Shown here in pieces: positions 1 through 57,471 of a DNA stretch of 64,000 nucleotides. The stretch lies in sequence record OU343168.1. One strand, given 5' to 3'. Every line of letters begins with the position of its first letter. Position 1 is the stretch's first letter. Below the pieces are notes generated by a model. The model was not told where the DNA came from. It searched no databases and worked only from the letters and a program-made list of their open reading frames with translations. Position numbers and translations under genes: made by a program.

Positions 1-1785
1 GCCTCTGTGCATTATGCAGGTATTAGTGACGTCTTCTTCAACATCTCTGACCACTCCAGTCATCTCCTGTTGGAGAATAAGGTGATTGTTGGTATGTCAC
101 GTCTAGGGTTGAGGGTCTCCTTCCCGGGGTTGTTTAGTCGCTTGCAGTTCAACAAAGACCCGAGTGTAACCGACAGTGGGATGTTGAGGGATTACATGCA
201 CGCGGACAATGCGAACTTCTCGGGGGTGGGAAAATGGGAAACTCCCAGTTACCCTATTAAGAACGGGGGGCGAATCAGTGCGGTGGGGTATGAACTTACC
301 GGGGAGTATTTCTGGGCGGACAGCGCTGTGGACCATAACCGGTCGTTCTTCTACCGGAAGGTCAGCGGTGAATACGCTGCGCGTCCTGGGATTACCAACA
401 GTAACTACCCCACCTTATTGACTCGACCGATCAGTGCGGAGGTGTACGAGAACCGGTTAGACCGTAATACTTCCCTGATCAGTGTAACCGGGAGTGCGGC
501 GTTCCTGACCGCTGAAGGGATTGAAATGGGGAACAGTTGTTTCTCTGTAATGGGAATGAACCATTTCGACGACCTGGCCTCAGGGGTTGAATCCGATACC
601 ACATGCCCCCGTGAGTTTACCTTTAAAGCCCCTAAAGGAAATGGGATCGTGTTATCCTGCCCTAGGACCTTCAGTCGGGTAATGGACGCTGGGGATCAAA
701 CCTTTACCCTGAAGGGTGAAAGCCATTGGGGTGTTAAGCGTAACGTCATGGATAAACTGATCCAGTTGATCCCCGCTACCCTCAGGGAGAAATGGGCGGT
801 TGAGTTGATGGTGATCAATCCCGTCAGTGGTAAAGGGTTCAGTCGGATGAACTACGTGCTGGCGTTGGTTCATACCCGGGACATCGAAGTGGGTCGGTAT
901 GTGGTCAAGAGTAAACTGTTGGCCTGTGCACCGGTGATTGGTAATCCAGTCTCGGGGGTCTACCCGATTGATGACCTTACGATTCTTGATCAAACCGCAT
1001 TTATCACTACGGTGAACAACAGTGGGGCTGGGGATGAGTGGAGTGATACGGAAGCGGATGTTGTGGCGTGTCCTCAGGTGTCGCTTTATGTGGATGAAAC
1101 AACGAATACCCTCTCCGGGCGTATTTCGTCGTTATACAACGTCCGAGGCGACGCCTTGGGGTTCAACAAAGCCGTCCTGACCTTCAGTCTCAATAAGTCC
1201 ACCCACAAATTCTCCAGTTTTACACCCTTTAACAACGGGGAAGGGATGTCCACGGCGTGGTGTGTGCAGAACCACACCATTCCTAACGCCGGGTTAATTA
1301 CCCAACAGCAAGGCTATGTCTTTGAGGACACCGGCGGCGCGGGGTATGTAGGGAAGATCGGAACGAACACGTATTTGATTGGTTCCTGTTACCCGGAAGT
1401 GGGTTGGACGATTTTCTTCCAAGAAGAAGTCGAGATGATGATCAACGGTACCGTGTACAAAATGCCAGGTGGGTCTATCGACTTGAGGAATGTGTCCTCG
1501 AATCCTCGTAACAAAACGTTCTACATCTATGCGACGGTTGAAGAGTCGGAAGGACGGTATATTGTCTCCGATGTTAAACTGCGGCGTTCCAGTGAGTTGC
1601 TGCATGTCGCAACCGCCGTGACGAACACCAACCAGATTGCCAGTATTACCCGGCAGAAAGTCTTTACCATCGGTGAGTTCCTATTAAGTTACACACGGAC
1701 GGGAGGGATTATTCCGGTGAGTTCTGGTTTACCGCAGGATGAAGGTACGTTTAGCTTCTTGAAAGCCTCGGAACTTTTACCTTAA
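1..1785 (+). CDS. Virion tail/baseplate-associated protein, 5'-truncated by the window
   Basis: Frame is open from base 1. C-terminus (LLSYTRTGGIIPVSSG) resembles that of the next gene and the large phiKZ-type tail protein family (recalled as gp145/146-like). Confidence 0.6.
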   Translation, partial: ASVHYAGISDVFFNISDHSSHLLLENKVIVGMSRLGLRVSFPGLFSRLQFNKDPSVTDSGMLRDYMHADNANFSGVGKWETPSYPIKNGGRISAVGYELTGEYFWADSAVDHNRSFFYRKVSGEYAARPGITNSNYPTLLTRPISAEVYENRLDRNTSLISVTGSAAFLTAEGIEMGNSCFSVMGMNHFDDLASGVESDTTCPREFTFKAPKGNGIVLSCPRTFSRVMDAGDQTFTLKGESHWGVKRNVMDKLIQLIPATLREKWAVELMVINPVSGKGFSRMNYVLALVHTRDIEVGRYVVKSKLLACAPVIGNPVSGVYPIDDLTILDQTAFITTVNNSGAGDEWSDTEADVVACPQVSLYVDETTNTLSGRISSLYNVRGDALGFNKAVLTFSLNKSTHKFSSFTPFNNGEGMSTAWCVQNHTIPNAGLITQQQGYVFEDTGGAGYVGKIGTNTYLIGSCYPEVGWTIFFQEEVEMMINGTVYKMPGGSIDLRNVSSNPRNKTFYIYATVEESEGRYIVSDVKLRRSSELLHVATAVTNTNQIASITRQKVFTIGEFLLSYTRTGGIIPVSSGLPQDEGTFSFLKASELLP

Positions 1786-1790
1786 GGTAA

Positions 1791-1811
1791 AGGGGGAGTT
1801 AACCTCCCCCT
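1791..1811. terminator. GC-rich hairpin
   Basis: AGGGGGAG/CTCCCCCT stem between genes. Confidence 0.5.
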
Positions 1812-1834
1812 GATCTTTTAAATGGAGTAGCTTT

Positions 1835-4705
1835 ATGATTATCCTTGGCGGGGAACCCCCTTTCATCGAAAACCCTGAACCCAGGTTCGGTGGAGTGATC
1901 TCCAAGCTCAATGAGATGACCTACAAACTGGAAGCGTGTGTTCACAGCTACAATGAGGGGACTAAAGAAAAGATCCGGTTGTTCAACGCAAACCTGAATG
2001 ATTTCATTAACCAAGCCATTGTCCCCATTGACGCCCACATCAATTCCCGTGGGGCGGTCCACGGTGAAACCAAACGGACGATTGGGTTGGGCCTTAAGGA
2101 CAACTACCGGACAGCTACCCTGGAGGAACAACAGTCGCTGGCGCCTGTGTTGGCGTACGTGACCCCTCACGGTGCTCGTGCTGCGGTTGTAACCCACAAT
2201 GTCGGTTATAACGGTGCAGATTATCAACCCAATGACGTGTTCCAATTCTCGTCGTTCTACAACCCGGATGAATACCCGGTGGTTGCTCCAACGGTGATTC
2301 AACCCATTCGTTATTTTGGGTACTCTCTGAATGTCGGGATGATGATCAACAATGACCGTCTGGTGTTGTCTCCGGTTACCGATCCGTCTCGTTACCAACG
2401 GTACACCGCCTTCTTGTCTGGTTCTCTGGCGAACGCAGGGGGAACACAGTTCTCGGAGATTCAGAACCTCAACGCGTATTACACCGGACGGAATTGGAAT
2501 GCGGTAGGAGGGTTTACCAGTTCGGGCAAAGTGGCCTTCTTTAAACCCCTGGCTGAGAAGAAGATCTACGAGTTCAAGAACACCCTCCCATTAACCCCCA
2601 GTAGTGCTAACTTCCTGCTGTATCAAGGGTATAGCACGGCGGTGTATAAAGGGCTGGGGATTAGTTGGGACCGAGTCGGTACGGTTCTGACCCTAAAGCA
2701 CTACTTCTTCAACGTGAACTTCCTGGAAACCGATCCCACTTTGGTGGAACAGGTGACTGCGTCGTACACCGCCCGGTTTACTCAAATCAATAAGACACCG
2801 TATACCGGACCGGCTAACGGGAGTCATTCGTACGACATTAATGACTTTGTGACCCTGAGTGCAGGTCAGACCCTGGAGATGAATGGAGGACTGCAACCCA
2901 CCACAGCCCTCTTCTGGAACATTCAAGACCGGGAAATCTACCTCTTTGTCGTTATTCCGGTGAATGTGGTCCAAGGGGGTATTCGCCGACCGTATAACCT
3001 CTCCTTCGTGGAATCCATTGTCCCGGGTACCTTGGAGAATGGAGGAACGGCAACCTTTACCCAACTGGGTAATTTGGTCAAGGACATTATTCAACCGAAT
3101 ATGCTACCCACTGCTGACGCTAAATGGCTGCGGTACGCGAACACCTGGGATTTCAATAATCCGACCTGGTATCCTGGGGTCGTTCTGAAGTCAGGGGAAG
3201 TGGTTAAAGCGGTCGCCACGAAGAATGGCCTACGGGTTAAGCGATTTACCACCCCCCATAAAGGCTTGAGGGAATGGGTGTTGGGAGAACGGGCTGAAGT
3301 GGGGATGGATGAAGTTCGTACAGAGTTTTATCCTCCGTCACGCCATAGCCCGTTTGGGCCGGTTCCTGATCGCTTATTCCCCATTGAACACACCGCTGGC
3401 ACCACACGGTATCTGGCGTATTCCGTTGACAGTGAAACTGGGTTGTATGAGTGGAGTGAGTTGACCTGGTCGAATACTTCCATTGTGGGTGTAACCACTG
3501 GGAATAAGTTCGGAATGGTTCCACCGGATGTTGGGATTATTAATCGGGAGTTGACCCGTATCCCTAGGGCCATGGCATCGTTCGCTAGCCTGCTGGTGGA
3601 TGGAGTCAGTATCAACGCCCTGTGTTTCACACCGGATAACCAGTATACCGGGTATGCGTCAATCGCCCTGGCGAATGGACGAGTCCAGTTGGGCGCTGAG
3701 GTCAAACTCTCCCCAACCAGCTTGATTACCCTGCAAGCCGCCAGTGGGGGTATTCTGGCTCGTGCAGCCATTGCGAACCCTCAAGTCAACAACGCCCTCA
3801 GGGAAAGTGTAATCAACGTCTTTGCCGTCGCAGATAACTTCGCGTTGGTGGTGATCACCGATGGGATGTGTTACGCAGAGGCTGCTGTGGTTCCGTATAC
3901 GGTGAGTGGTGGGGTCTTTAGGCTGAACTTCCCCTCCGCTACGGGCTTCGTTACTAAACCGGTTACCCCAGCCGGTATGGTCGTACCGGGCACGTACCGT
4001 TATTCCCATTCCGGTGATAACCCATGGATGACCTACGTGGATATCCAAGTGATTGAAACCCAACGGTATGAATGGGCGGTTGTGGTCAGTCGACCCTTTG
4101 GGGACCTCTACGGGGATATCAGTTTCAAAATCACGGATTACCCGTTTACACCCACCTACACTGTAGGACGGGTCAATCCAGCGAAACTGTATACGGCGTC
4201 ATCACCCTTTGATACGGTGAACGAAGTTCACCCACCTGTCTTGATCCCTCGGAAGGGAATCTACCAGTACGACCCTGCTAACACCGGCTACTCCACGAAT
4301 CTGTTGGAAGTCGGCGGAGCGGGGGTGGTGGATCCATACGACGTAAATGAAAGCGGATGGGTGAGTATTCCTGCTCGATCCAGGGTGGTTATAAGGGGAC
4401 GCGCGTATATCCTGGATAAGGAATACCCCATTAAAGTCAATCCTGCCGGAACGACGTACTGTTATTTGGTACGCCAAGGGGATGCGTTGGTAGGGTTGGG
4501 GTCTCCTGTACGCCGAGAGGTCAATAACTCGGAAGTCCTCTTTGGGATTGCAACGAACGGAATTCTTACCATCGATCATTCGTACATCGTGATGGGTGGT
4601 CATGTGGTGAGTTCTACCCGTCGGGGTACAGCTATTCCCACCTTTGTGGATGACGGGAACTTGGGGGCTAACACCTTCTTTACCCGACGTGACATCATTG
4701 ATTAA
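1835..4705 (+). CDS. Large virion tail protein (956 aa), phiKZ-type tail paralogue family
   Basis: SD GGAG then ATG; beta-rich; C-terminal VVSSTRRGTAIP similar to upstream gene; lies next to the spike gene. Confidence 0.6.
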   Translation: MIILGGEPPFIENPEPRFGGVISKLNEMTYKLEACVHSYNEGTKEKIRLFNANLNDFINQAIVPIDAHINSRGAVHGETKRTIGLGLKDNYRTATLEEQQSLAPVLAYVTPHGARAAVVTHNVGYNGADYQPNDVFQFSSFYNPDEYPVVAPTVIQPIRYFGYSLNVGMMINNDRLVLSPVTDPSRYQRYTAFLSGSLANAGGTQFSEIQNLNAYYTGRNWNAVGGFTSSGKVAFFKPLAEKKIYEFKNTLPLTPSSANFLLYQGYSTAVYKGLGISWDRVGTVLTLKHYFFNVNFLETDPTLVEQVTASYTARFTQINKTPYTGPANGSHSYDINDFVTLSAGQTLEMNGGLQPTTALFWNIQDREIYLFVVIPVNVVQGGIRRPYNLSFVESIVPGTLENGGTATFTQLGNLVKDIIQPNMLPTADAKWLRYANTWDFNNPTWYPGVVLKSGEVVKAVATKNGLRVKRFTTPHKGLREWVLGERAEVGMDEVRTEFYPPSRHSPFGPVPDRLFPIEHTAGTTRYLAYSVDSETGLYEWSELTWSNTSIVGVTTGNKFGMVPPDVGIINRELTRIPRAMASFASLLVDGVSINALCFTPDNQYTGYASIALANGRVQLGAEVKLSPTSLITLQAASGGILARAAIANPQVNNALRESVINVFAVADNFALVVITDGMCYAEAAVVPYTVSGGVFRLNFPSATGFVTKPVTPAGMVVPGTYRYSHSGDNPWMTYVDIQVIETQRYEWAVVVSRPFGDLYGDISFKITDYPFTPTYTVGRVNPAKLYTASSPFDTVNEVHPPVLIPRKGIYQYDPANTGYSTNLLEVGGAGVVDPYDVNESGWVSIPARSRVVIRGRAYILDKEYPIKVNPAGTTYCYLVRQGDALVGLGSPVRREVNNSEVLFGIATNGILTIDHSYIVMGGHVVSSTRRGTAIPTFVDDGNLGANTFFTRRDIID

Positions 4706-4715
4706 CCCTTAACGA

Positions 4716-4750
4716 CTCCCCCTACCTCCCCGTTAAGGGAGGTAGGGGAG
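4716..4750. terminator. Bidirectional hairpin between convergent genes
   Basis: CCCCTACCTCCC/GGGAGGTAGGGG stem. Confidence 0.7.
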
Positions 4751-4760
4751 GTCAGGTGGA

Positions 4761-5768
4761 TTACGCCACGGGTGGCGAGGTGGTTCCATTGCCTGGGTCT
4801 ACACCTCCGTGAATATGGAGGTTCAGGGACACTCTCACGGTTCTCACATCGGTTTGTCCAATAACAAGACCCGTACTCACACTGTTACCGGTACGAGTGG
4901 TATTCCCGTTTTGGGTATAATTACCCTCTTGAGTATAATTCCCTTCTTGTTCAGTATTGCCCGTATGGGTAATGTTCCCTTCCCAGTTCGTCTGACCAAT
5001 GGCGATGTTCGCCAAATTGGCTTTCATGTTAATGGTGTCGGACTGAAGGTTAAAGGTCTTCGTTAAGACATTGATTTCCTTCTCCGCATGAAAGCTAATG
5101 CTGTCTTTGGTGTAAAAGGCCATCTTCTCCTTATTGACAGCAATGGTGGACCCTTCCTTGTTGGTATAGGTGAACTGATGTTTGTAATCATCGAAACTGA
5201 AGATACTTCCATCGGTTCCTCGAATATCGATACGGCCTTCTTTGGCATTGACTTGGATATCAAAGCCCGACCGTTCCCCATTGGACTGAGAGGTCCGCAG
5301 TCCCACTAACCCGTCGTGGGTACTGACCCTGGCTGTATAGAAGTTATCCGGATTAAAGGGGACGTCCTGAGCCAATCCAGGGTTAGCCCCCCAGCCCCAC
5401 AAAACCGTCTCTAAGCGGAAACGATCCGTGTTGTCTCCAAAGATGTCCCAGTAATACTGGTTCTGACCTGTGATTTGAAACACCCACACCTTAGCCCCTT
5501 CCCGGACATCCGGTGAGGTAAGTCGGTTCCCATTCCCAATGGATCGCCAGACCGCTGGTACGGTGTTTGAGACCAGGGTTTTACTGGTAATCATCTCCCC
5601 TTCTTTATTCTGGCTGGTTTCTTCCTTTTGTTCTGTCTTAGCCAGGGTTCTCCCATCGGCAGTAGGGGAATGCAATGGAAGGTGGATCATTGCTTCGTGG
5701 GTATTGGTGTCCTTCGTGGCGGCAACCGTCCCTACACCCAACCATTTAACCACGTTCACTAAACTCAT
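4761..5768 (-). CDS. Baseplate central spike protein (gpV/gp138-like; phiKZ gp164-like)
   Basis: N-terminal OB-like region, GN-x4 beta-helix repeats (GNITHT GNTEQE GNYTQE GNYTQN GNTTRT) and C-terminal HxH metal-binding apex (LHIHGGV). Confidence 0.75.
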   Translation of the reverse strand: MSLVNVVKWLGVGTVAATKDTNTHEAMIHLPLHSPTADGRTLAKTEQKEETSQNKEGEMITSKTLVSNTVPAVWRSIGNGNRLTSPDVREGAKVWVFQITGQNQYYWDIFGDNTDRFRLETVLWGWGANPGLAQDVPFNPDNFYTARVSTHDGLVGLRTSQSNGERSGFDIQVNAKEGRIDIRGTDGSIFSFDDYKHQFTYTNKEGSTIAVNKEKMAFYTKDSISFHAEKEINVLTKTFNLQSDTINMKANLANIAIGQTNWEGNITHTGNTEQEGNYTQEGNYTQNGNTTRTGNSVSTGLVIGQTDVRTVRVSLNLHIHGGVDPGNGTTSPPVA

Positions 5769-5818
5769 ACTCGCGTCCTCATTATCTAGAGACTCACTTC
5801 ACTTAAAGAATTCACACC

Positions 5819-8287
5819 ATGTTTATATTAACTAAATTGATCCTAGAGAATTACATTCCTCTGTTAAGCAGTGGAATCAAACGGGTAGAGTTGGATCTGA
5901 ATCATTTGGTTAACCTGTTGATCGCTCAGAACGGTGTCGGGAAAACCAGTATCCTCCGAGAAGCCAATCCCCTGGCTCCTGAAAATGCCAACTACCGCGG
6001 TATTGGACGCAAGTACGTGGAGATTAAACGGGGATTGGACCATTTCGTTTTGGATTCTAAAACAGACTTAGGCAATGGTCACAGTTTCAAGTTTAACGGG
6101 AAAGAGTTAAACAAGAATGGAACCTTTACGGAACAGAAGGACTTGGTATGGATCCATTTCCGGTTAGACAGTACTATCAGCCGTATTCTGTCCGGGCTTA
6201 AACCCAACAGTCTGTTTTCAGCGATGCCAGTGGCTCAACGTAAAGACTTCTTTATGTTCATCTACCCGAATGACACGAGTTACGCCTTAGGGGTCTTTAA
6301 CAAGCTTAAGACAGAACGTCGTGAACTGGCGGCTGCAATTAAGAACCAAGTCATGCGGTATACAGAAGAGAGTGCTAAACTCAAGCAGATCACTGAATGT
6401 GGTCCGGAAGAGCTGGAACGTCGAGTTAAGACGATTGAGACTGAACTGAGGGAGTCCCTGTTGGTACGAGGGGGGTTGGAGCAGGTGAAAGTAGACCCTG
6501 AGCTCCAAAGTAAGATTGATACCTTCAAACGCTTGGCTGAGCAGATGACATTGAACCGAGTCAGCGGGTTCTTTGAGACCGAGGCTGAACTCAGACAGGG
6601 AATCGAAACAGTTCAAGCTATCTTGAGTGTTCACGAAGGCCAAGCCACTGCCATTCAAATGGTTATCAGTGAGCACGTAGGGGTTTTGGAAGGAATGGAG
6701 GAGATCAAAGAAGATCCCTTTGTCTTCCATCATCAAGCGGAACAACTCAAGGTGGAACTCACTGCTCTCCGGGAAGAATACAAACAACATGGGGTGCTAT
6801 TGGGTAATTACCCTTTGTTCAACGATGACGCCTATGACTTTACCGGTTTGGAATTGGTGTACGATGCCTTGGTGGCTCAATTGCGTCGGGTGGTGAATGC
6901 CAGTACTCCTGAGTTAACCGGAGGGCGGTATAAAGAGTATACCGTCAAACTGGAGCAAACCCGTAATCAACTGAGGGCCTCTAAGAATGAGCTGGACACT
7001 CTCACCCACCAGTTGAAACATTATGATGCCATGGAACTGGTGACTTGTCCGGAATGTACCCATGAATTCAAGGTCGGGATTACCGCGAATGAACTGCGCG
7101 CAGCACGGGTTAAAGCGGAAGCCCTTAAGTTGAGTGTGACTAAACTGGAGCGGGATGTTGAAACCCTGGAAAGATTAGTCGAACAGGACAGTGAGTGGTA
7201 CCACAGCATGTTAGCCCTACATCAGTTCTGCCGGATGAATGGTGATGTTAAGTGCCTTCCTGAACTGATTAAAGCATACGACATGGGTAAGTCGGATACC
7301 AACATCCTTTTAAACGCCCTCAGGGCCTTCATGGGGCGTTTTAACTGTAAGAGACGTATCGACGCCCTACTAGAAGAAGAAAAGCTCTTAAACACGCGTA
7401 TAGGGCTTTTACAGAAGGATTCGGTATTAGACATCGCCACCTACTTAAAGAGTCTGGAACACGACCTGGAAGTGGAGAACAGTCGTATTGGTTTCTACCG
7501 CCGGCGTATTGAACAGCTTACAAGGAACCTAAAGACCATCCACACCTACACCCGAGACCTGGAAACCCTCCGCTGTCTTAAAGACGAGATCTTCAATGGG
7601 CTGGAACAACAAGGGTTGGTGGAACTGCGTAAACGGGTTGATGAACGGATTCATTTGCTAACGGATGAGAAGGATGAATACCTCGCCTCCATTATCAAAA
7701 GCCGTTCGTTGAGTGCAGTTGTCACGTCTATTTCGGAAGACATTGATCGTTTAAAACGCCGTCTGAAGATTGTGGATGGGTTAATGAACGGTCTGTGTCC
7801 GAATAAGGGGTTGATCGGTAAGCTGATGACGGATTTCATCAAGACCTATTGTGCCAATATGAATGCGGTGATTCAATCAGTGTGGAACACCACCCTGTTT
7901 GTTAAACCCTGCCATAAGGACAACGGGGATTTGAACTGGAAGTTCCCGGTGGTTACCGGTGATGATGAGCCCACGCCAGATGTCAGTGATTGCAGTTTGG
8001 GTGAAGCAGGTATCATTGACTTTGCGTTCCGTTATGTGGCCATTCGTTACCACGGTAACTTCCCTCTGATGCTGGATGAGGTGGGTACCACCTTCGATGA
8101 AATCAAACGCGGTCGTTTCTTCAATTTCATTCACGAGTTAACCACCCAGAAGGACGCTAAACAACTCTTCATGATTAGCCATTACATTACTCAATACGGA
8201 ATGTTCACCAATCCGAATGTAATTGCAATGTGTTATGAAGGGTTGAGTTTACCGGGTGAAGTCAATCAACACAGTGTTATCAATTAA
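5819..8287 (+). CDS. sbcC: SbcC/Rad50-like SMC ATPase
   Basis: Walker A AQNGVGKT, long coiled coils, central zinc hook CPEC, signature SLGE, Walker B LMLDE, H-loop ISH. Confidence 0.9.
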   Translation: MFILTKLILENYIPLLSSGIKRVELDLNHLVNLLIAQNGVGKTSILREANPLAPENANYRGIGRKYVEIKRGLDHFVLDSKTDLGNGHSFKFNGKELNKNGTFTEQKDLVWIHFRLDSTISRILSGLKPNSLFSAMPVAQRKDFFMFIYPNDTSYALGVFNKLKTERRELAAAIKNQVMRYTEESAKLKQITECGPEELERRVKTIETELRESLLVRGGLEQVKVDPELQSKIDTFKRLAEQMTLNRVSGFFETEAELRQGIETVQAILSVHEGQATAIQMVISEHVGVLEGMEEIKEDPFVFHHQAEQLKVELTALREEYKQHGVLLGNYPLFNDDAYDFTGLELVYDALVAQLRRVVNASTPELTGGRYKEYTVKLEQTRNQLRASKNELDTLTHQLKHYDAMELVTCPECTHEFKVGITANELRAARVKAEALKLSVTKLERDVETLERLVEQDSEWYHSMLALHQFCRMNGDVKCLPELIKAYDMGKSDTNILLNALRAFMGRFNCKRRIDALLEEEKLLNTRIGLLQKDSVLDIATYLKSLEHDLEVENSRIGFYRRRIEQLTRNLKTIHTYTRDLETLRCLKDEIFNGLEQQGLVELRKRVDERIHLLTDEKDEYLASIIKSRSLSAVVTSISEDIDRLKRRLKIVDGLMNGLCPNKGLIGKLMTDFIKTYCANMNAVIQSVWNTTLFVKPCHKDNGDLNWKFPVVTGDDEPTPDVSDCSLGEAGIIDFAFRYVAIRYHGNFPLMLDEVGTTFDEIKRGRFFNFIHELTTQKDAKQLFMISHYITQYGMFTNPNVIAMCYEGLSLPGEVNQHSVIN

Positions 8288-8291
8288 TTTT

Positions 8292-8311
8292 AAACCTACA
8301 TTATTCATTTG
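8292..8311 (+). promoter_or_regulatory. Early promoter motif AAACCTACATTAT-N4-TTG
   Basis: One of ten intergenic copies; resembles phiKZ early TATATTAC. Confidence 0.75.
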
Positions 8312-12966: not shown

Positions 12967-13005
12967 GTTTAATTGCCTACTTACCTGTAAAAGGGAGGTT
13001 AACGA

Positions 13006-13497
13006 ATGTCCAAAACAAAGAGGAATGACCGATATGTCATTTATACCGATGGGAGTGCGTTAGGGAATCCAGGTCCGGGCGGTTACGGTGTTTACGCTAA
13101 ATACAAAGGGGAAGAATTCTCCCTGAGTAAAGGGTATTACAAAACCACTAACAACCGCCAAGAACTCATGAGTGTGATTGCAGCCCTGGAAGAGTTTGGT
13201 CCTAATATCAAAGTGGACATCTTCACTGACTCCCAATACGTCATTAAGTGTGCTACTAAATGGATGAGAGGATGGATACGGAACAACTGGATGGGGTATA
13301 ACTCTGGGCAACCGGTTAAGAACCGCGATCTGTTGGAAGTCCTCAATGAACTCTTGAAGAAGAATAAGGTAAAGTTCCATTGGGTTAAAGGTCACTCTGG
13401 GGATGAAGGGAATGAAAAGGCAGACCAATTAGCCAAGGATGCTGCCAATAATCCGGAAGCCCACGATATGGAATACATGAAAGTCTTAGGGTTCTAA
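13006..13497 (+). CDS. rnhA: Ribonuclease HI
   Basis: YTDGSALGNPGPGG, TTNNRQEL, TDSQYV, WVKGHSG..GNEKADQLA: all catalytic DEDD residues present. Confidence 0.95.
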   Translation: MSKTKRNDRYVIYTDGSALGNPGPGGYGVYAKYKGEEFSLSKGYYKTTNNRQELMSVIAALEEFGPNIKVDIFTDSQYVIKCATKWMRGWIRNNWMGYNSGQPVKNRDLLEVLNELLKKNKVKFHWVKGHSGDEGNEKADQLAKDAANNPEAHDMEYMKVLGF

Positions 13498-13522
13498 TCA
13501 ATCAACCGTGGAGATTCACGCT

Positions 13523-14761
13523 ATGAAAAGCTTTATTGATGTATCAGTAGTAGAAGATGGGGGTAAACAGTTCCTCTTCGGTATTACTGCGAATCAAAAG
13601 ACAGGACGACCCGAAGTCGTAGGATATACCGATCCTGATTATTTCAGAGAGGGTGCTGACCGTGTGTTTGAACAGCTTATCCGGGGAGAACAACGAAAGG
13701 AAGCGAATATTAAGCTCCAGTTGGCCTTTATTAAGGCGGTCAAGGAACATCCCGGTAAACAACTGCAACTCACGCTTTGCTACAGCGCAAATGGACCGTC
13801 AGCTGGAGAATTTTATTGGGTGGAGGATCGGTGTTATACAGTTGACGGAGCGTCCTTCCTATCGAAAGAACCAGTGTGCATCTATCATAAGAACTGTCTG
13901 GATGGTACTGCGGCAGCTTGGGCGGTAAGACGTGCACTCCCCTTGGTTGAATTGGTGGCTATGAGCTATCATGATGATCCGTACGAACTCTTTGGCCCGG
14001 GGTTGGAGTATCTACAAGGGAGAATGGTCTATTGTGTTGATTTCAGTTTTAAGAAAGCAGTTGTAGAAGCGATTGCTAATCTACCGGATACAGTCTTGAT
14101 AATCTTGGATCATCACGAGAGTGCTCAACGGGAACTGGGTGAACTCGTCGTTGTTTATTCCGGGAAATCAACGCTGGGTGATCGGGTTGAGATTATCATC
14201 GATATGACACGTTCAGGCGCTAAGTTGACGTACGACTACTTCCACCCTCAACAACCGACGCCTCCGGGTATTCTGGCAGTACAAGATCGGGATCTGTGGA
14301 AATGGGAGTACGAAGGCAGTAAGGAATGGACCGCAGCCGCCTTTGGGTATCCCCTCACCGTTGAGAGTTTCGATAAACTGATTCATCGGGATTACCAAGA
14401 CGTGGTAGAAGAAGGTCGTACCGTCCTTCGTAAGCAGGAATTGGATGTTGAGAAACTGCTCCCGAGTGCGCGGCCTTACACGTTGGAGGGTTACAACTGC
14501 TTGATTGTTAATGCCAGTTATTTCCACGCCAGTGATGTAGGGGATAAACTGAAGGGTCGAGACGGTATTGACTTTGTAGTCACTTACATGGATGGTAAGG
14601 ATAGCCGTATCTTCTCTCTACGGGGTAAGGATAAAGTGAATCTAGCGGAAGTGGCTGAACGTTTTGGAGGAGGCGGCCACCCTAACGCAGCGGGGTTTTC
14701 ACTCTCCTACGACGATCCCCGTTTCTCCCAGTCACACCTGTTACTGTATTCCGGTACTTAA
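13523..14761 (+). CDS. DHH/DHHA1 phosphoesterase with an extra N-terminal domain of about 110 aa
   Basis: IYHKNCLDG, VYCVDFS, ILDHH, SGA, QDRDLW, SLR, FGGGGHPNAAGF; SD GGAG before ATG 13523. Confidence 0.85.
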   Translation: MKSFIDVSVVEDGGKQFLFGITANQKTGRPEVVGYTDPDYFREGADRVFEQLIRGEQRKEANIKLQLAFIKAVKEHPGKQLQLTLCYSANGPSAGEFYWVEDRCYTVDGASFLSKEPVCIYHKNCLDGTAAAWAVRRALPLVELVAMSYHDDPYELFGPGLEYLQGRMVYCVDFSFKKAVVEAIANLPDTVLIILDHHESAQRELGELVVVYSGKSTLGDRVEIIIDMTRSGAKLTYDYFHPQQPTPPGILAVQDRDLWKWEYEGSKEWTAAAFGYPLTVESFDKLIHRDYQDVVEEGRTVLRKQELDVEKLLPSARPYTLEGYNCLIVNASYFHASDVGDKLKGRDGIDFVVTYMDGKDSRIFSLRGKDKVNLAEVAERFGGGGHPNAAGFSLSYDDPRFSQSHLLLYSGT

Positions 14762-14929
14762 ATGGACACTCACACACTGTTCTTAATCATTGACCTGGTA
14801 GGTAAATCCGTTTTTATTGGTGACTTAGTGACTCGCGTGGACGACCATCGACTTATGAAGTCTATCCGATATTTGGAGAATCGGAAGGTGATTAAAACAG
14901 TTACGGTTACCCAATGTTTACGTAACTAA
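14762..14929 (+). CDS. Small hypothetical protein (55 aa), absent from ORF track
   Basis: ATG directly follows the DHH stop; translates MDTHTLFLIIDLVGKSVFIG...TQCLRN; followed by a terminator. Confidence 0.55.
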   Translation: MDTHTLFLIIDLVGKSVFIGDLVTRVDDHRLMKSIRYLENRKVIKTVTVTQCLRN

Positions 14930-14949
14930 CAGGTATTCCATTTGATGGG

Positions 14950-14997
14950 GGGTGGTTAGTATACAGGCTAACCACCCTGTTCTCTCTATTTTTTTTT
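14950..14997 (+). terminator. Intrinsic terminator with T-tract
   Basis: GGGTGGTTAG/CTAACCACCC then a T run. Confidence 0.7.
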
Positions 14998-15010
14998 CGG
15001 GATAAGTGGA

Positions 15011-15436
15011 ATGAATAATTACGGGTATGTGGATGTGTCCTTGGTAGGACCTGAAGTAGAGGAAATCTTTGGCTTGCTCTTGGAGTGTGGTATTGCACCG
15101 GCTGCGGAGTATAACCTGCATTGTACCCTGATGTACGATGAACAGGCAGAAGAACCGCTGGTGAAACTGAATCCTGATGCGAAATTCACCGCCTACGTGA
15201 CAGGGATTGATGTACTGGGAGATGGATTGGTGTTTAACCTTACCAGCAAAGACCTCGCTGATGAACACCGCAGGTTGAAAGACGGTGGATATACCCATTC
15301 CTTTGATGCCTTCTTACCGCACATGTCTGTCACCTATGACTTCGATGAATACGACATGTTGAAAGTGAAGCAAGCTTTCGCAACCTGGGGTGGTCGACAA
15401 CTCACCTTCAGTAAAGAATCGTTCGGAACCAAATAA
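15011..15436 (+). CDS. acb1: 2H phosphoesterase, Acb1 (T4 gp57B)-like anti-CBASS nuclease candidate
   Basis: Two HxT/S motifs (H37-C-T39, H104-M-S106); GYV start, L-x2-L-x-S-x2-L-x3-H and G-Y-THSFD-x-F-x-PH match my recollection of T4 57B. Confidence 0.75.
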   Translation: MNNYGYVDVSLVGPEVEEIFGLLLECGIAPAAEYNLHCTLMYDEQAEEPLVKLNPDAKFTAYVTGIDVLGDGLVFNLTSKDLADEHRRLKDGGYTHSFDAFLPHMSVTYDFDEYDMLKVKQAFATWGGRQLTFSKESFGTK

Positions 15437-15445
15437 GACCCGATA

Positions 15446-15475
15446 CTACCCCTACCCTTGACCGGGTAGGGGTAG
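15446..15475 (+). terminator. Hairpin after the acb1-like gene
   Basis: CTACCCCTACCC/GGGTAGGGGTAG. Confidence 0.7.
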
Positions 15476-15512
15476 GTTTAAGGGAGTAAAAAATTAAGTT
15501 AAGGAATGAAAC

Positions 15513-15532
15513 AAACCTACATTACCAGGGTG
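15513..15532 (+). promoter_or_regulatory. Early promoter motif AAACCTACATTAC-N4-GTG
   Basis: Intergenic, after a hairpin, before 15599. Confidence 0.75.
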
Positions 15533-15598
15533 AATAGACAACGGGATTGTTTGCAGGTAAGTGACTTTCCCTTCTAAAGACAGAAAAGGGTTATAAAG

Positions 15599-16813
15599 AT
15601 GAGCGTGACTACTGACTTCAATGCCGCCCTGGCGAATGTCTTGAGTGACATCGGTGAAAAGACAGACCGTGAGGAGATCCTGTCGATCATCTACCACCAC
15701 CTCTTCGACGAGACGCGTTTCAATAAATCAAAGCGTCCGTCTGCGCTGAAGAAGATCAACGAGGCGACTCGTTCCCGGTTTACGATGAACGACGTTCGTC
15801 ACGCCGGTAAGAAACCGGAGAAGTTGATCGTAACGGATAAACTGTCCGGTCATGTTGACATTCCCGTCCGTGTGATGGGTGAAGTGAATGAACAGGCCTC
15901 GCAGGCAGAGACTGTTCCGGCAACCCCCACTGAAACTGATGCAATGACCCACCTGGAGAACACCATGAAAGAAGAAAACCAACCGCTCGCCCAACAACTC
16001 CTGGAACGATCCCAAGGTGCCCGCGCCGCCTATGAAGAACAGGCGGGGGCTTCCAGCTGGTCCGACAGCAATGACAGCGACGAGGTCGTCGAGGTACTGG
16101 GGGTGACCTTCAAGGCCGATAACATCCTGTCCTACACCATCGACGCCTGGCTGATCAACGGCGGTCTCCCGACTCACCTGAAGACCGAACTGGAAGAGCT
16201 CGTCAAGAGTCAAGACCACTCGTCCCCGGCGGGTGCGCTCCGTGCCTTCCTGGACGACCACCCCGAACTCAGCCAGGAGTTCATCAATCAGTACAGCAAG
16301 GCGGTAAAAGACATCAACGCCACCGGCGTGGAAGCTGAAAAGGCGCGCCGTGATGCGGCTAAAGCCCAACGGCAAGCGCCGGGTACCTTCAAGGAACGTG
16401 TCGTTTACACCCTCCGGGGCGGTCGTGAAGAAGGCTTCGGTTCCGGCGCGGTGGCGGCCGCTGCGGCGATCATCGGCGGCGGTGTCGAAATGGCGTCGCG
16501 TGGGAATGTGAGCATCGGTTCGGTTGTGGGTACGGGTCTGGGTGCAGCGGCCAGTTACTTCGCGGCTGAGAAGGCTGAAAGCCTCATGAAGAGCGAACCG
16601 GGTCGTTACATCGTGAGTGGTTCGATCGGTCTGATCCTGGGTGGGGCGGGTTCCAACCTCGGACGTACCACTCAAGGCCTTCTGGGCTTCGGTCCTCAGC
16701 AGCCCCAAGGCGAGCCCGTAGCGGCGGTTTCCGTTCGGGAGCAGGTCACGGCGCAACCGGAACCGGTTCCTCAATCCCAGGGTATTCTGGCCACGGTAGC
16801 TGCCCTGTTCTAA
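15599..16813 (+). CDS. Hypothetical early protein with C-terminal glycine-zipper hydrophobic segments
   Basis: Behind promoter 15513; strongly C/G-ending codons; AVAAAAAIIGGG, VVGTGLGAAA, SGSIGLILGGAG segments. Confidence 0.75.
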   Translation: MSVTTDFNAALANVLSDIGEKTDREEILSIIYHHLFDETRFNKSKRPSALKKINEATRSRFTMNDVRHAGKKPEKLIVTDKLSGHVDIPVRVMGEVNEQASQAETVPATPTETDAMTHLENTMKEENQPLAQQLLERSQGARAAYEEQAGASSWSDSNDSDEVVEVLGVTFKADNILSYTIDAWLINGGLPTHLKTELEELVKSQDHSSPAGALRAFLDDHPELSQEFINQYSKAVKDINATGVEAEKARRDAAKAQRQAPGTFKERVVYTLRGGREEGFGSGAVAAAAAIIGGGVEMASRGNVSIGSVVGTGLGAAASYFAAEKAESLMKSEPGRYIVSGSIGLILGGAGSNLGRTTQGLLGFGPQQPQGEPVAAVSVREQVTAQPEPVPQSQGILATVAALF

Positions 16814-16870
16814 GCAATACGGAATAACAGCGAACATGATTAAACTCAGTTAATCGACTGACGGTGCTCG

Positions 16871-16896
16871 ACTACGAGGGGTTATTCCCTCGTAGT
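16871..16896 (+). terminator. Hairpin
   Basis: ACTACGAGGG/CCCTCGTAGT. Confidence 0.65.
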
Positions 16897-16922
16897 TGGG
16901 TATTCGTTCTCTATTTTTTAAT

Positions 16923-16942
16923 ACACCTACATCATTCTTGTG
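16923..16942 (+). promoter_or_regulatory. Early promoter motif ACACCTACATCAT-N4-GTG
   Basis: Intergenic, after a hairpin. Confidence 0.7.
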
Positions 16943-16977
16943 TAATAAGAGTGTTTATTTTTGTTAGAGGTAAGGTT

Positions 16978-17298
16978 GTGAACACATCCTACACACCACA
17001 TAAACCCCTCCAGTTCAGCCATCAGTTCTTCTACACCATGGGGTATAAGGCTGGGTACTACGGAGCTCCACTCGAATTCAAGGATTACTCCTTGTCTTCG
17101 TGCCAATTCAATTGCCTCTACTTGGGGTATATCCACGGGTATTCTGAGAAGAGAAAGAAAGGGATTTGGAATTTCCTTAAGAATGTCTACCTTAAAGTGC
17201 GGTATGAAAGAACCCCTATCGGGGATTCCCAAGTCCAGTTTGAGAAGGACTACGGTCATATCCCCCAGATTCGTTATCACCTTAATCCATCCGAATAA
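16978..17298 (+). CDS. Hypothetical protein
   Basis: GTG after GAGG/AAGG SD, downstream of promoter 16923 (track start extends through the terminator). Confidence 0.6.
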   Translation: MNTSYTPHKPLQFSHQFFYTMGYKAGYYGAPLEFKDYSLSSCQFNCLYLGYIHGYSEKRKKGIWNFLKNVYLKVRYERTPIGDSQVQFEKDYGHIPQIRYHLNPSE

Positions 17299-18527: not shown

Positions 18528-18608
18528 GACTCCCCAACCACCCCACCCTGTAAAGGAGTTGGGGTGGTGAGTATTTATTTCTTTTTAGTTTAAAACGTAT
18601 TTATTCTC

Positions 18609-18628
18609 AAACCTACATTATTCATATG
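18609..18628 (+). promoter_or_regulatory. Early promoter motif AAACCTACATTAT-N4-ATG
   Basis: Intergenic, after a hairpin. Confidence 0.75.
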
Positions 18629-37300: not shown

Positions 37301-37527
37301 TTACCTTTAAGAACAACCCCTTGAGTTGAGAGGGATTCTAGACTCTCCTTCAACCACCGGGTACGCGCATCCAACACCCGAGCTTGGAAGTTAGCCGCAC
37401 CCTCGCCGTTGTCTCCCCCGCGAACCCGTACGTCAGTCACCAGAGCCGGGAGGTGTTCTTCCCATCGAGACTCCTCGACAATCGCCGGTAGTTCACCCGG
37501 TGTTACTGTTTCATCGCCAATAGCCAT
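34387..37527 (-). CDS. Collagen-like tail fibre with repeated globular modules
   Basis: Gly-X-Y tracts (GKDGKDGTDG, GEPGKNGERGEQGPEG) alternating with about nine hhhG.V....LP...W..LG.FKG modules and four S-x-E-x-W...GN...EFL.S..G modules; N-terminal ANFQARVLDARTRWLKE anchor. Confidence 0.85.
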   Translation of the reverse strand: MAIGDETVTPGELPAIVEESRWEEHLPALVTDVRVRGGDNGEGAANFQARVLDARTRWLKESLESLSTQGVVLKGKLNSEAELEAIDTQELPIGTAYFVNFALRVWNGNEWASSGSLQGERGINLLGVWPDNLDLPLPEGNKPGDAYLWRNDIHVLVPGKTAGEFVWESLNIRGPDGKSTFELWKEIPGNEEKTLQEFLASQRGDKGAQGDDAFETWKKIPGNENKTITEWQEAIRGERGANLQVQGTVADRNALNAKDPVDQHGWVTLDTGHLWIYIADRTDWVDVGQYKGKDGKDGTDGKSIVVKGAVDLASELPSNAAEQDAWSVRADNTVRMWIENNWVILGKFKGEDGRNGVDGRNLIVKDTVATIDDLPNPGVEQDVYSVQDENTLYIYLNSAWRKLGGFKGDKGDVGPGGLNSVQVWLNKPENQGKTEDDYWAAMKGEPGENLNVLGTVGTRADLDNLPNPPANQDGYVTRDTLRLYVWSAASSTWLDLGPFKGKDGIDGQSTYELWISKGNTGSEEEFLASLHGRNGTNIVLRGVVDTVADLPADPEDQWVYAVRDENAIYGFISNAWANLGVFKGKDGENGKDGLNGKSLDIIKVLTPADADPPPINEETQGKAYVDLNKDLWVNTGTRWDNVGPVSMPGSDGAPGAGLNMVDVVPTLAELPAAGDYKQGDAILVLENHLTYFVNDEREWSPGFDFRGEPGKNGERGEQGPEGPAVPIKGDYANLAALQAAIPAGVAGDAYYLAESNTLAIWSTSTNAWRETGEWRGQTGKTGGDGPPGPQGKPGIQGEQGSRWLTLPPGVDAPSDAFSGRVGDWAVSETFNVFYKTVDRGWVLWGRLVAGDVNSPMESEGRVVRLGNRWVPLPIGPVPNAVAGTYYAQAVNAEGDGTEWKAIEFPKGIEDLQAKDGKQYVRVFRAGTDIPEWKELELTFDRYDLPIKVFTTSGEINPLVDQYIQINNTAAGGKQMVIADGPKAPVRGMVLTVNVTGGAGVVTFSGKDATPLVWHNGTPPSVSGSELVYVFTWNGTKWIGALGAVVP

Positions 37528-37544
37528 TTAAGAAATTCCTCTGA

Positions 37545-38987
37545 TTAAGGGGTAAAAACAAGATGGGTGTTCAATTGACCCACCCGCACGGTGGTCGTTT
37601 GGGCGACCCCTTTCTTCAACACAATCACGACCCGGAGTTTCAAGGCCTTAGGGGCTCTGGCCAATTCAAGGATTTGGGTATCGAAGATCCCCGAGAGATC
37701 CCCTTGACGCAGGGGGTAATTCAGTTCAACGTTCTGACCCGAGCGTACAGTTTGGACTTGATCGTCCTGGTAGGTTACTTCCAGTTCCAGTCCTACTTGC
37801 AAGACCGCTTCCGCATCGGTTTGAATCGCCCAACGACCCTGAGCTACCAATTTCATCCCTACGGTCAGGTTTGTAATAGGGAGATCCTGTTCCATTCCCA
37901 AGGTCGGTTGATTACCGGTAGGCGTGCCCGTAAAGGACATCACCTGGTATTCGCCCCCTGAAGGGTTGGTTTCCTTGGTAATAGCAACGGTCAAACCGGT
38001 CAGTTGACTACCCCCAATACCGGTATTCGAGGCGATCTCTACCGTAGTAATAGTAGCACCTCCCGAATCCCCCGCTCCACCATCATTACCGATCAACAAA
38101 GGGTTGGGGTTAATGCTCCCGAAGAAGTGGGCGGTCTCTGGCGGTGTCGTGCTGAACGGGATGTAACTGGTTGGCAAGGTAATGGTATTCTTGAACAGCT
38201 TGCTCACCGCAGCAGCGACATGGTTACCAATGACCTCGGCTCCTTTGGGACTCGGGTGTGCACCGTCCCCCAGCATGCCCGCCAGCGGCTTATTGACATT
38301 ACCCGGCTCTACCATGTCATCCCAGGGGTTAACCACCACAATGCCCCGTTTAGGCAGCTCAGAGAGCATCCACTGGTGCACTTGGTAATGAATAGCCAAT
38401 TGTTCATCACTGAGCCCAATAGCGGCTTGTTCTACCGGGGTTTCAGCGATCACAATGACGGTTTTGCCATTGGCCAGCAATGTGGCGTAAATCTCGGAGA
38501 GGTTATTGATCGTTTCATTGAACGTCTGGTTGCGCAGACGGTCGTTCCCCGAACCCAAATGGATAATGACATCGAACTTATCCAGGGAAGCCAGGAGTTG
38601 GGGAAGGCGTTGGGCTTGTTGGGAGGTAGTATTCCCATCGACACCGGCGTTCATGGCATCCGGGAAGGCTACGGCTCCCTCGGTCTTCGCACTGGTCCAG
38701 AAGGCCAGACCGACGTTACCTTTCACGCACTGGTAAGCCCGGCTATCACCGTATACCACGATATTGCGGTTAAACGGCAACCGGTCATTACTTACCGCAT
38801 TGACTTTGGTGGTCAGGGTATTCACTTCTTCTTTCAAATAACGGGTACGAGCGTCCAGCACACGCGCTTGCTTGTTCGCATTGCCGGTGCCTTCTTCGGT
38901 GGCTTCAACCTTGTCATCCGGCATCAGAGCCAGTAAAGGTTCAACCCATTCCGGTTGTTCATTAATCACTACGGGATTGTCAGCCAT
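37545..38987 (-). CDS. Tail spike with SGNH/GDSL esterase domain
   Basis: Blocks VYGDS, GVDGNTT, LGSGND, DGAHP (S-D-H triad); N-terminal ANKQARVLDARTRYLKE anchor shared with the fibre. Confidence 0.85.
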   Translation of the reverse strand: MADNPVVINEQPEWVEPLLALMPDDKVEATEEGTGNANKQARVLDARTRYLKEEVNTLTTKVNAVSNDRLPFNRNIVVYGDSRAYQCVKGNVGLAFWTSAKTEGAVAFPDAMNAGVDGNTTSQQAQRLPQLLASLDKFDVIIHLGSGNDRLRNQTFNETINNLSEIYATLLANGKTVIVIAETPVEQAAIGLSDEQLAIHYQVHQWMLSELPKRGIVVVNPWDDMVEPGNVNKPLAGMLGDGAHPSPKGAEVIGNHVAAAVSKLFKNTITLPTSYIPFSTTPPETAHFFGSINPNPLLIGNDGGAGDSGGATITTVEIASNTGIGGSQLTGLTVAITKETNPSGGEYQVMSFTGTPTGNQPTLGMEQDLPITNLTVGMKLVAQGRWAIQTDAEAVLQVGLELEVTYQDDQVQTVRSGQNVELNYPLRQGDLSGIFDTQILELARAPKALKLRVVIVLKKGVAQTTTVRVGQLNTHLVFTP

Positions 38988-39596: not shown

Positions 39597-39702
39597 AGAA
39601 GTAGATAGAGGGTTCGGTCATTAGACCATAAAATTGGTAAATAAAATAGTACCCAAACCCATATTCTTCACTTACCTGGTTATTTAACTTGAGGTTCTTT
39701 TC

Positions 39703-39722
39703 AAACCTACATAATCAGGGTG
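39703..39722 (+). promoter_or_regulatory. Early promoter motif AAACCTACATAAT-N4-GTG
   Basis: Start of the plus-strand early island. Confidence 0.7.
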
Positions 39723-57443: not shown

Positions 57444-57451
57444 GATTTTTC

Positions 57452-57471
57452 AGACCTACATTATTCGTTTG
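57452..57471 (+). promoter_or_regulatory. Early promoter motif AGACCTACATTAT-N4-TTG
   Basis: In the 49-bp divergent gap. Confidence 0.7.

Follow-up and report, generated by a model that had tools for sequence, protein, structure and literature searches.

The window considered here is a stretch of 64,000 nucleotides (nt) from sequence record OU343168.1, and it contains a small gene whose product of 141 amino acids (aa) belongs to the Acb1 family of two-histidine (2H) phosphoesterases (Table 1). Positions 13000 to 17000 of the window show 100% identity to Pseudomonas phage vB_PaeM_phiRU (phiRU, 211,869 bp) and 97–98.5% identity to phage EL (98.5%) and eight other EL-like phages of Pseudomonas aeruginosa. 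The genus Elvirus is classified in Chimalliviridae, and the RefSeq record of EL annotates a nuclear shell protein as well as a PhuZ tubulin. This taxonomy and annotation support the placement of phiRU as a jumbo phage of a nucleus-forming family. Together with the identity to the 211,869-bp genome, they also bear out the jumbo-phage context given in a preliminary description of the DNA, which had been made from the letters and their open reading frames (ORFs). In one comparative study, chmA was not detected in the EL cluster (PMC11448039).

The reading frame of the gene is intact. In-frame stop codons lie within 14 codons upstream of the ATG, so a longer N-terminus of the 141-aa protein is impossible, and the antisense ORFs overlapping the gene give no significant family match. 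The two catalytic motifs, H37-C38-T39 and H104-M105-S106, are present exactly as the preliminary description had written them, and so are the other segments quoted there, namely GYV (residues 5–7), a 14-residue segment (residues 73–86) and a 12-residue segment (residues 93–104). The protein is 100% identical to ORF126 of phage EL (PPEV_gp126), which is labelled 'hypothetical protein' in GenBank and 'RNA ligase' in RefSeq. The latter name stems from the family label of PHROG 755, which the protein matches with an expectation value (E) of 1.1e-27. Relatives of T4 57B carry the label 'RNA ligase' as well.

Table 1. Positions in the window of the Acb1-family gene, its functional codons and the surrounding features
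Feature	Position	Strand	Remarks
19-nt motif, nearest upstream copy	8287..8305	+	annotated in EL as 'putative phage promoter'; window scan
RNase H gene	13006..13497		PF00075, E 1.2e-45
DHH/DHHA1 phosphoesterase gene	13508..14761	+	417 aa; PHROG 4771, E 2e-99; two genes upstream
55-aa ORF	14762..14929	+	directly upstream; no family match
Hairpin, 12 bp, G+C-rich (14949–14978), followed by T-rich run	14949..15000	+	-26.8 kcal/mol, z = -3.4 against shuffled sequences
Acb1-family 2H phosphoesterase gene	15011..15436	+	ATG start, TAA stop, 141 aa plus stop
Tyr6 codon	15026..15028	+	equivalent of nucleobase-stacking Y12 of T4 Acb1; hhalign and mafft
First catalytic motif, H37-C38-T39	15119..15127	+	aligned to H44-x-T46 of T4 Acb1
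Phe98 codon	15302..15304	+	equivalent of nucleobase-stacking F107 of T4 Acb1; hhalign and mafft
Second catalytic motif, H104-M105-S106	15320..15328	+	aligned to H113-x-T115 of T4 Acb1
W126-G127-G128 codons	15386..15394	+	in loop preceding last strand
C-terminal gene end	15425..15436	+	G139 at the position of T4 E141; hhalign, same for E141 with mafft --add
Hairpin, 12 bp, weak T tract	15446..15475	+	10 nt past stop codon; -30.4 kcal/mol, z = -4.3 against shuffled sequences
19-nt motif, next copy	18604..18622	+	window scan
19-nt motif, further copies	39698..39716, 57447..57465	+	window scan

Membership of the Acb1 family

The protein matches the Pfam family PF23474 (Acb1) with 43.5 bits (cut-off 27, E 3.5e-11) over model positions 29–122 of 144, compared with 202.7 bits over model positions 1–144 for T4 57B. 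The LigT-like family PF13563 scores 20.8 bits, which is below its cut-off of 27, and PF02834 gives no match in the same Pfam search. No NCBIfam model matches either the 141-aa protein or T4 57B. Profiles were needed to reach solved structures, since a single-sequence phmmer search of the PDB gave nothing significant (9q2g at E 0.4). With a profile of the close family, the Acb1 of phage FBB1 (7t26) is matched with E 2.4e-4 and the phosphodiesterase PDE-9 of phage BCSR5 (9q2g) with E 3.8e-4; a broad profile brings these values to 3.1e-22 and 5.2e-20, respectively.

The close family comprises 18 protein clusters of 50–100% identity, all 141–147 aa long and all with a PF23474 match, several of which lie on contigs of 210–241 kb. 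H37, T39, H104, M105, and S106 are invariant in the alignment of these 18 relatives. A profile search of 1.84 billion representatives returned 681 relatives at E ≤ 1e-3. All 126 aligned single-domain representatives match PF23474, and 47 of the 126 also touch PF13563. A tblastn search of phage genomes gave 108 records; of the 60 listed, 55 have a length of 200 kb or more, so the EL-type branch is concentrated in jumbo phages.

For the comparison with T4, gene 57B of phage T4T (HM137666.1) was used as the reference; it was reached by tblastn with an intermediate relative. An hhalign comparison of the 126-member family profile with T4 57B gives a probability of 99.5% (E 3.9e-22, 142 columns), and direct BLASTP of the protein against T4 57B aligns 41 residues only, at 37% identity. 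Another intermediate family member (P0109) did not reach T4 by tblastn. Two intermediate searches were directed at the C-terminus of FBB1 Acb1, one of which (P0098) was empty and the other (P0136) aligned the core only.

The AlphaFold2 model built from the 18-sequence alignment has a predicted local distance difference test (pLDDT) score of 91.2 and a predicted template modelling (pTM) score of 0.82. Its predicted fold order is beta-alpha-beta-beta-beta-alpha-beta-alpha-beta, with the last strand reaching residue 140. In a Foldseek search of the PDB with this model, PDE-9 ranks first (9q2y/9q2g, E 2e-7 to 9e-7, template modelling (TM) score 0.71–0.73), and the top five matches consist of PDE-9 and FBB1 Acb1 (7t26/7t27, E 7e-6 to 4e-5, TM 0.55–0.64). 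Plant cyclic phosphodiesterase (CPDase) and Usb1 are matched with E about 1e-3 to 1e-4. E. coli LigT (5ldi, 5ldm) is found at rank 40 or lower, about 1e5-fold weaker than the top matches (E about 2e-2, TM 0.43–0.48). In the viral structure library BFVD, the best matches are the jumbo-phage proteins of RisingSun (44% identity, TM 0.84), fHe-Yen9-04, Miami, and PaBG. All four are named 'Anti-CBASS protein Acb1' in UniProt, CBASS being the cyclic oligonucleotide-based antiphage signalling system.

The preliminary description had called the gene product a divergent Acb1-like 2H phosphoesterase, and this assignment is supported by the PF23474 score above its cut-off, by the hhalign probability of 99.5% to T4 gp57B and by the predicted structure. 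The structural alignment to Acb1 that it had suggested, when run on the AlphaFold2 model, places Acb1-type enzymes as the nearest solved folds. A closer similarity to LigT-type enzymes, named there as the outcome that would speak against the assignment, was not found, as is evident from the PF13563 score and the LigT Foldseek value given above.

Acb1-like domains also occur inside larger proteins of 272–912 aa, where they are fused to other domains (P0040, P0049, P0053, P0071, P0077, P0108, P0120). With the Acb1-family profile, matches are obtained to the C-terminal region of the cyanophage Pam3 portal protein (PDB 8hds_A, residues 482–596, E 3.3e-8) and to a region annotated 'portal protein' in Vibrio phage vB_VpM-PP270 (PV883422.1, positions 37446–37874). 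Several jumbo-phage homologues carry the annotation 'structural protein'. It may therefore be that virions carry some of the Acb1-like domains. The paper describing RisingSun and Joad gives no evidence placing the homologue in virions.

Residues kept and lost relative to T4 Acb1

T4 Acb1 possesses the catalytic tetrad H44/T46/H113/T115, the stacking residues Y12, W74, F107, and W147, a contact to adenine N6 by E141, and a C-terminal lid formed by residues 145–152 (Hobbs 2022, PMC9117128). Nine published residues of T4 Acb1 were found at their published positions in T4T 57B, which confirms the pair of H-x-T motifs that the preliminary description had attributed to the T4 enzyme. The mapping of these residues onto the phiRU protein rests on hhalign, because addition of T4 57B by mafft --add misaligned the middle of the protein; mafft --add agrees on Y12, the tetrad, F107, and E141 (Table 2).

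Table 2. Equivalents of T4 Acb1 residues in the phiRU protein and the composition of the corresponding columns among the 126 family representatives
T4 Acb1	phiRU protein	Outcome	Family column
Y12	Y6	kept	Y or F 96%
H44	H37	kept	H 100%
T46	T39	kept	T 99%
W74	L69, hairpin 4 residues shorter	lost	Leu commonest, 64%
F107	F98	kept	aromatic 96%
H113	H104	kept	H 100%
T115	S106	conservative change	S or T 99% (74% S, 25% T)
E138	E136	kept	Glu 69%
E141	G139	lost	Glu 46%; Gly nearly invariant in EL-type subfamily
L143	K141, last residue	chain end	
Lid 145–152 including W147	none	absent	

The catalytic tetrad is thus complete, with a serine in the second motif, and of the four stacking aromatics of T4 Acb1 two are retained, as Y6 and F98. 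Since its last residue corresponds to T4 L143, the protein has neither the C-terminal lid nor W147. PDE-9 of phage BCSR5 has a 15-residue N-terminal lid in place of the C-terminal one (Doherty et al., bioRxiv 10.1101/2025.08.21.671373). This lid is absent as well, since five residues only precede Y6, which aligns with Y19 of PDE-9.

The five residues before Y6 compare with a family median of 10, and the five residues after E136 with a median of 7. Ends of at most eight residues on both sides are found in 48 of the 126 representatives. This protein alone among the 126 has at most five at both ends, and all 18 close relatives share the short architecture. The minimal form is therefore the extreme of a common architecture and not a truncation artefact.

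Within the EL-type subfamily, W126 and G128 do not vary. Across the family as a whole, tryptophan is rare at position 126 (7%), and at position 128 glycine is no more than the most frequent residue (37%). The W126-G127-G128 loop is a candidate stand-in for the missing lid aromatic.

Genomic surroundings of the gene

The Acb1-like gene sits within a block of + strand genes. Upstream of it are encoded a nicotinamide adenine dinucleotide (NAD)-dependent DNA ligase, an RNase H and a DHH/DHHA1 phosphoesterase, and the downstream neighbour proteins give no family match. The DHH/DHHA1 protein carries an N-terminal extension of about 105 residues without a family match. DHH/DHHA1 enzymes include nanoRNases and cyclic-dinucleotide phosphodiesterases, and a role of this protein in the clearance of nucleotide signals or of their products is conceivable, if unsupported. 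The order RNase H, DHHA1, small ORFs, Acb1-like gene and a gene for a 400–520 aa protein recurs in two metagenomic contigs of jumbo phages (236–241 kb), the Acb1-like proteins of which are 59–68% identical. In RisingSun, Miami, and Serratia phage BF, the order RNase H, DHHA1, Acb1-like gene is not kept. A two-step pathway involving the upstream DHH/DHHA1 enzyme was considered and dropped, because the adjacency is found only in the EL-like lineage and is absent in these three phages.

In the two metagenomic contigs, an ORF of 56–67 aa at the place of the 55-aa ORF overlaps the Acb1-like start by 11–20 nt, which suggests translational coupling there. In the phiRU window, the 55-aa ORF and the Acb1-like gene are parted by an 81-nt spacer that contains a hairpin. 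The hairpin and the T-rich run behind it look like an intrinsic terminator, which ends about 10 nt before the start codon. No sigma-70-like promoter was found between this hairpin and the start codon. A 19-nt motif was defined from nine annotated EL sites, and its copies in the window match 15–16 of the 16 strongly conserved positions. The copies divide the window into + strand blocks, with the Acb1-like gene lying between the copies at 8287 and 18604.

The homologue in Serratia phage BF (357 kb, NC_041917.1) has different neighbours. There, a cluster at positions 532–6391 of the stretch examined also encodes a cytidyltransferase, a nicotinamide phosphoribosyltransferase, a Sir2 protein and a Nudix hydrolase. 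The homologue lies with the nicotinamide phosphoribosyltransferase gene on one side and the Sir2 and Nudix genes on the other. This cluster may be an NAD-related counter-defence island.

Proposed function and its alternatives

T4 Acb1 and nine further homologues cleave 3'3'-cyclic GMP-AMP (3'3'-cGAMP) and cyclic tri-AMP (cAAA) (PMC9117128). Cleavage of 3'3'-cGAMP, cyclic UMP-AMP (cUA) or cAAA is known only for T4, FBB1-type homologues and PDE-9 (PMC9117128; bioRxiv 10.1101/2025.08.21.671373). The phiRU protein shares with T4 Acb1 (gp57B) the PF23474 domain, the H-x-T/S tetrad, the stacking residues Y12 (Y6) and F107 (F98), its small size and its phage origin. In contrast to the phiRU protein, the T4 enzyme has W74, E141, and a C-terminal lid with W147, and it carries threonine instead of serine in the second motif. 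Acb1 of Erwinia phage FBB1 (7T26, 7T27) has the same compact 2H fold with a U-shaped pocket (Foldseek E 7e-6, TM 0.62–0.64), and its N-terminal G-x-Y and both catalytic motifs align. However, identity is about 15%, the alignment reaches no further than chain residue 113 of 144, past the second motif, and the C-terminal lid of FBB1 Acb1 has no counterpart in the phiRU protein. PDE-9 of Burkholderia phage BCSR5 (9Q2G, 9Q2Y) is the best structural match; it degrades 3'3'-cGAMP and falls in structural group 3 together with T4 Acb1 (bioRxiv 10.1101/2025.08.21.671373). It differs in its N-terminal lid and in the tryptophan kept in the hairpin, and the BCSR5 genome is roughly 70 kb and not of jumbo size. 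A more distant likeness is to the avian poxvirus cGAMP phosphodiesterase (9BKQ, 9CIW), which is also a 2H enzyme degrading an immune cyclic dinucleotide, but is about 200 aa long, has an N-terminal lid and is matched by Foldseek with E about 3e-3 to 1e-2.

On this basis, the gene product is probably a small Acb1-family 2H phosphodiesterase that needs no metal, resides in the cytoplasm and degrades immune cyclic-nucleotide signals. From the analogy with these relatives, we infer the catalysis, the substrates and the counter-defence role of the 141-aa protein. H37/T39 and H104/S106 would act as general acid and base, as in T4 and FBB1 Acb1 and in PDE-9. The 3'-5' phosphodiester bond of a cyclic oligonucleotide messenger would come under attack from the neighbouring 2'-OH, and the ring would be opened through a 2',3'-cyclic phosphate intermediate. 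CBASS effectors, and possibly effectors of type III CRISPR (short palindromic repeats, clustered and regularly interspaced) systems that depend on cyclic triadenylate (cA3), would then stay unactivated. Immune signals of this kind arise and are perceived in the cytoplasm of the host, which for a chimallivirus means outside its nucleus, and a soluble degrading enzyme would for this reason complement the shell. The preliminary description had argued that a nucleus-like shell would not block signalling defences. This argument is inferential but reasonable, and it finds support in the literature, as immunity by NucC activated with cA3 is effective against a phage that forms a nucleus (review PMC13282480). 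With regard to the anti-CBASS role proposed in the same description, the homology to Acb1 holds, the activity and the role are putative, and the substrates of the T4 enzyme cannot simply be carried over.

Several points weigh against the proposed function. Of the five determinants of substrate recognition published for T4 Acb1, three have no equivalent (W74, E141, and W147); the C-terminal lid and the N-terminal lid of PDE-9 are likewise lacking, and the PF23474 match is confined to the core of the model. T4 Acb1 lacking residues 145–152 was inactive in a cell assay, and two of the eight structural groups of viral 2H phosphodiesterases cleaved none of 18 messengers (both bioRxiv 10.1101/2025.08.21.671373). 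The upstream neighbours are nucleic-acid enzymes and not known anti-defence genes. A literature search found no activity data for the 141-aa protein or its subfamily of 141–147 aa. On the other side, removal of the lid from PDE-9 left an enzyme that could still degrade 3'3'-cGAMP within an hour, and substrate choice in viral 2H phosphodiesterases is set by the core and not by the lid (bioRxiv 10.1101/2025.08.21.671373). Because three of the five determinants and both types of lid are missing, the same substrates as for T4 Acb1 are not to be assumed; a different and possibly narrower range is expected.

A possible but doubtful extension of this reading is that the EL-type proteins of 141–147 aa, together with the approximately 38% of nearby family representatives that are equally short at both ends, form a natural lid-less 'core-only' class of Acb1. 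In such a class, residues particular to the subfamily, for example the invariant W126-G-G loop and G139, would take over recognition, and a possibly narrow substrate choice would spare other host cyclic nucleotides. If so, nucleus-forming jumbo phages would remove one activating signal and spare the nucleotides that are monitored by decoy-type defences.

In an unlikely alternative, which the loss of recognition residues also favours, the protein is a 2H phosphodiesterase acting on a non-classical signal: a single messenger (for instance the cA3 of type III CRISPR/NucC), a species with a 2'-5' linkage or one as yet undescribed. Specificity would then be set by the minimal core, and 'anti-CBASS' would be the wrong label for the same chemistry. 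Viral 2H phosphodiesterases with conserved active sites differ sharply in their substrates, and some groups act on one or few messengers (bioRxiv 10.1101/2025.08.21.671373). The adenine-reading glutamate and two stacking tryptophans of T4 Acb1 are absent here, and G139 and W126 are invariant or nearly so in the subfamily but not across the family, which suggests subfamily-specific recognition. However, CBASS signals are what both the sequence family and the closest structural match, PDE-9, degrade, and the sequence points to no particular alternative substrate.

It is quite improbable that the protein is a LigT/ThpR-type enzyme, healing RNA ends or hydrolysing 2',3'-cyclic phosphodiesters in nucleic-acid metabolism beside RNase H, DNA ligase, and DHH/DHHA1. 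Such enzymes (PF13563, PF02834; e.g., 5LDI) have the fold of the 2H superfamily and both H-x-T/S motifs in common with it, but they are larger, with about 170–190 aa. The 'RNA ligase' label of RefSeq and PHROG 755 favours this assignment, as do the weak PF13563 match, the 47 family members that touch PF13563 and the place of the gene behind RNase H and DHH/DHHA1 in a block that is conserved. Yet PF13563 stays below its cut-off where Acb1 exceeds it, Foldseek gives about 2e-2 for LigT against 2e-7 for Acb1-type enzymes, the label is carried over from a family that includes T4 57B relatives, and the adjacency to DHH is lost in RisingSun, Miami, and BF. Neither an ATP-dependent RNA ligase nor a polynucleotide kinase appears in the annotation of EL, in which most genes are 'hypothetical', and this somewhat weakens an RNA-repair role.

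Least credible is that the protein has a conserved 2H fold but acts little or not at all on messengers, being possibly virion-associated or a binding protein: both known lids are missing and T4 Acb1 needs its lid in cells, two structural groups are inactive on 18 messengers, and homologues are annotated 'structural protein' or fused to portal proteins, but the catalytic histidines, Thr/Ser and two stacking aromatics are invariant down to 20–30% identity, which argues for selection on catalysis, and PDE-9 is active on 3'3'-cGAMP without its lid.

The degradation of immune signals by an Acb1-family enzyme thus remains the preferred reading. The basic identification of the gene is not a discovery, because proteins of this sort are already recognised by family models and named Acb1 in UniProt, and a precomputed PF23474 domain is present on the exact protein in a public protein collection. 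Homologues of acb1 in jumbo phages are routinely reported by anti-defence finders (PMC13573597, PMC11780129), and others were found by PSI-BLAST in a study of P. aeruginosa (PMC10889362). Among the papers searched, none was found to link Acb1 with phage EL, and neither EL, RisingSun nor Pseudomonas phages are mentioned in the supplement text of Hobbs 2022 and Doherty 2025. Tad1 is described as the only anti-defence protein experimentally characterised in jumbo phages so far (2026 review PMC13282480). The modest new point is that this lineage is a minimal form of Acb1 without either known lid and without the adenine-reading glutamate.

The assignment to Acb1 puts right the misleading names in public records ('RNA ligase', 'hypothetical protein'), and the minimal form makes tractable the question of how the cores of 2H phosphodiesterases choose their signals. 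Nucleus-forming phages are shielded from DNA-targeting defences and exposed to cytoplasmic signalling, and an Acb1-family enzyme conserved in EL-like and many other jumbo phages would fit this gap.

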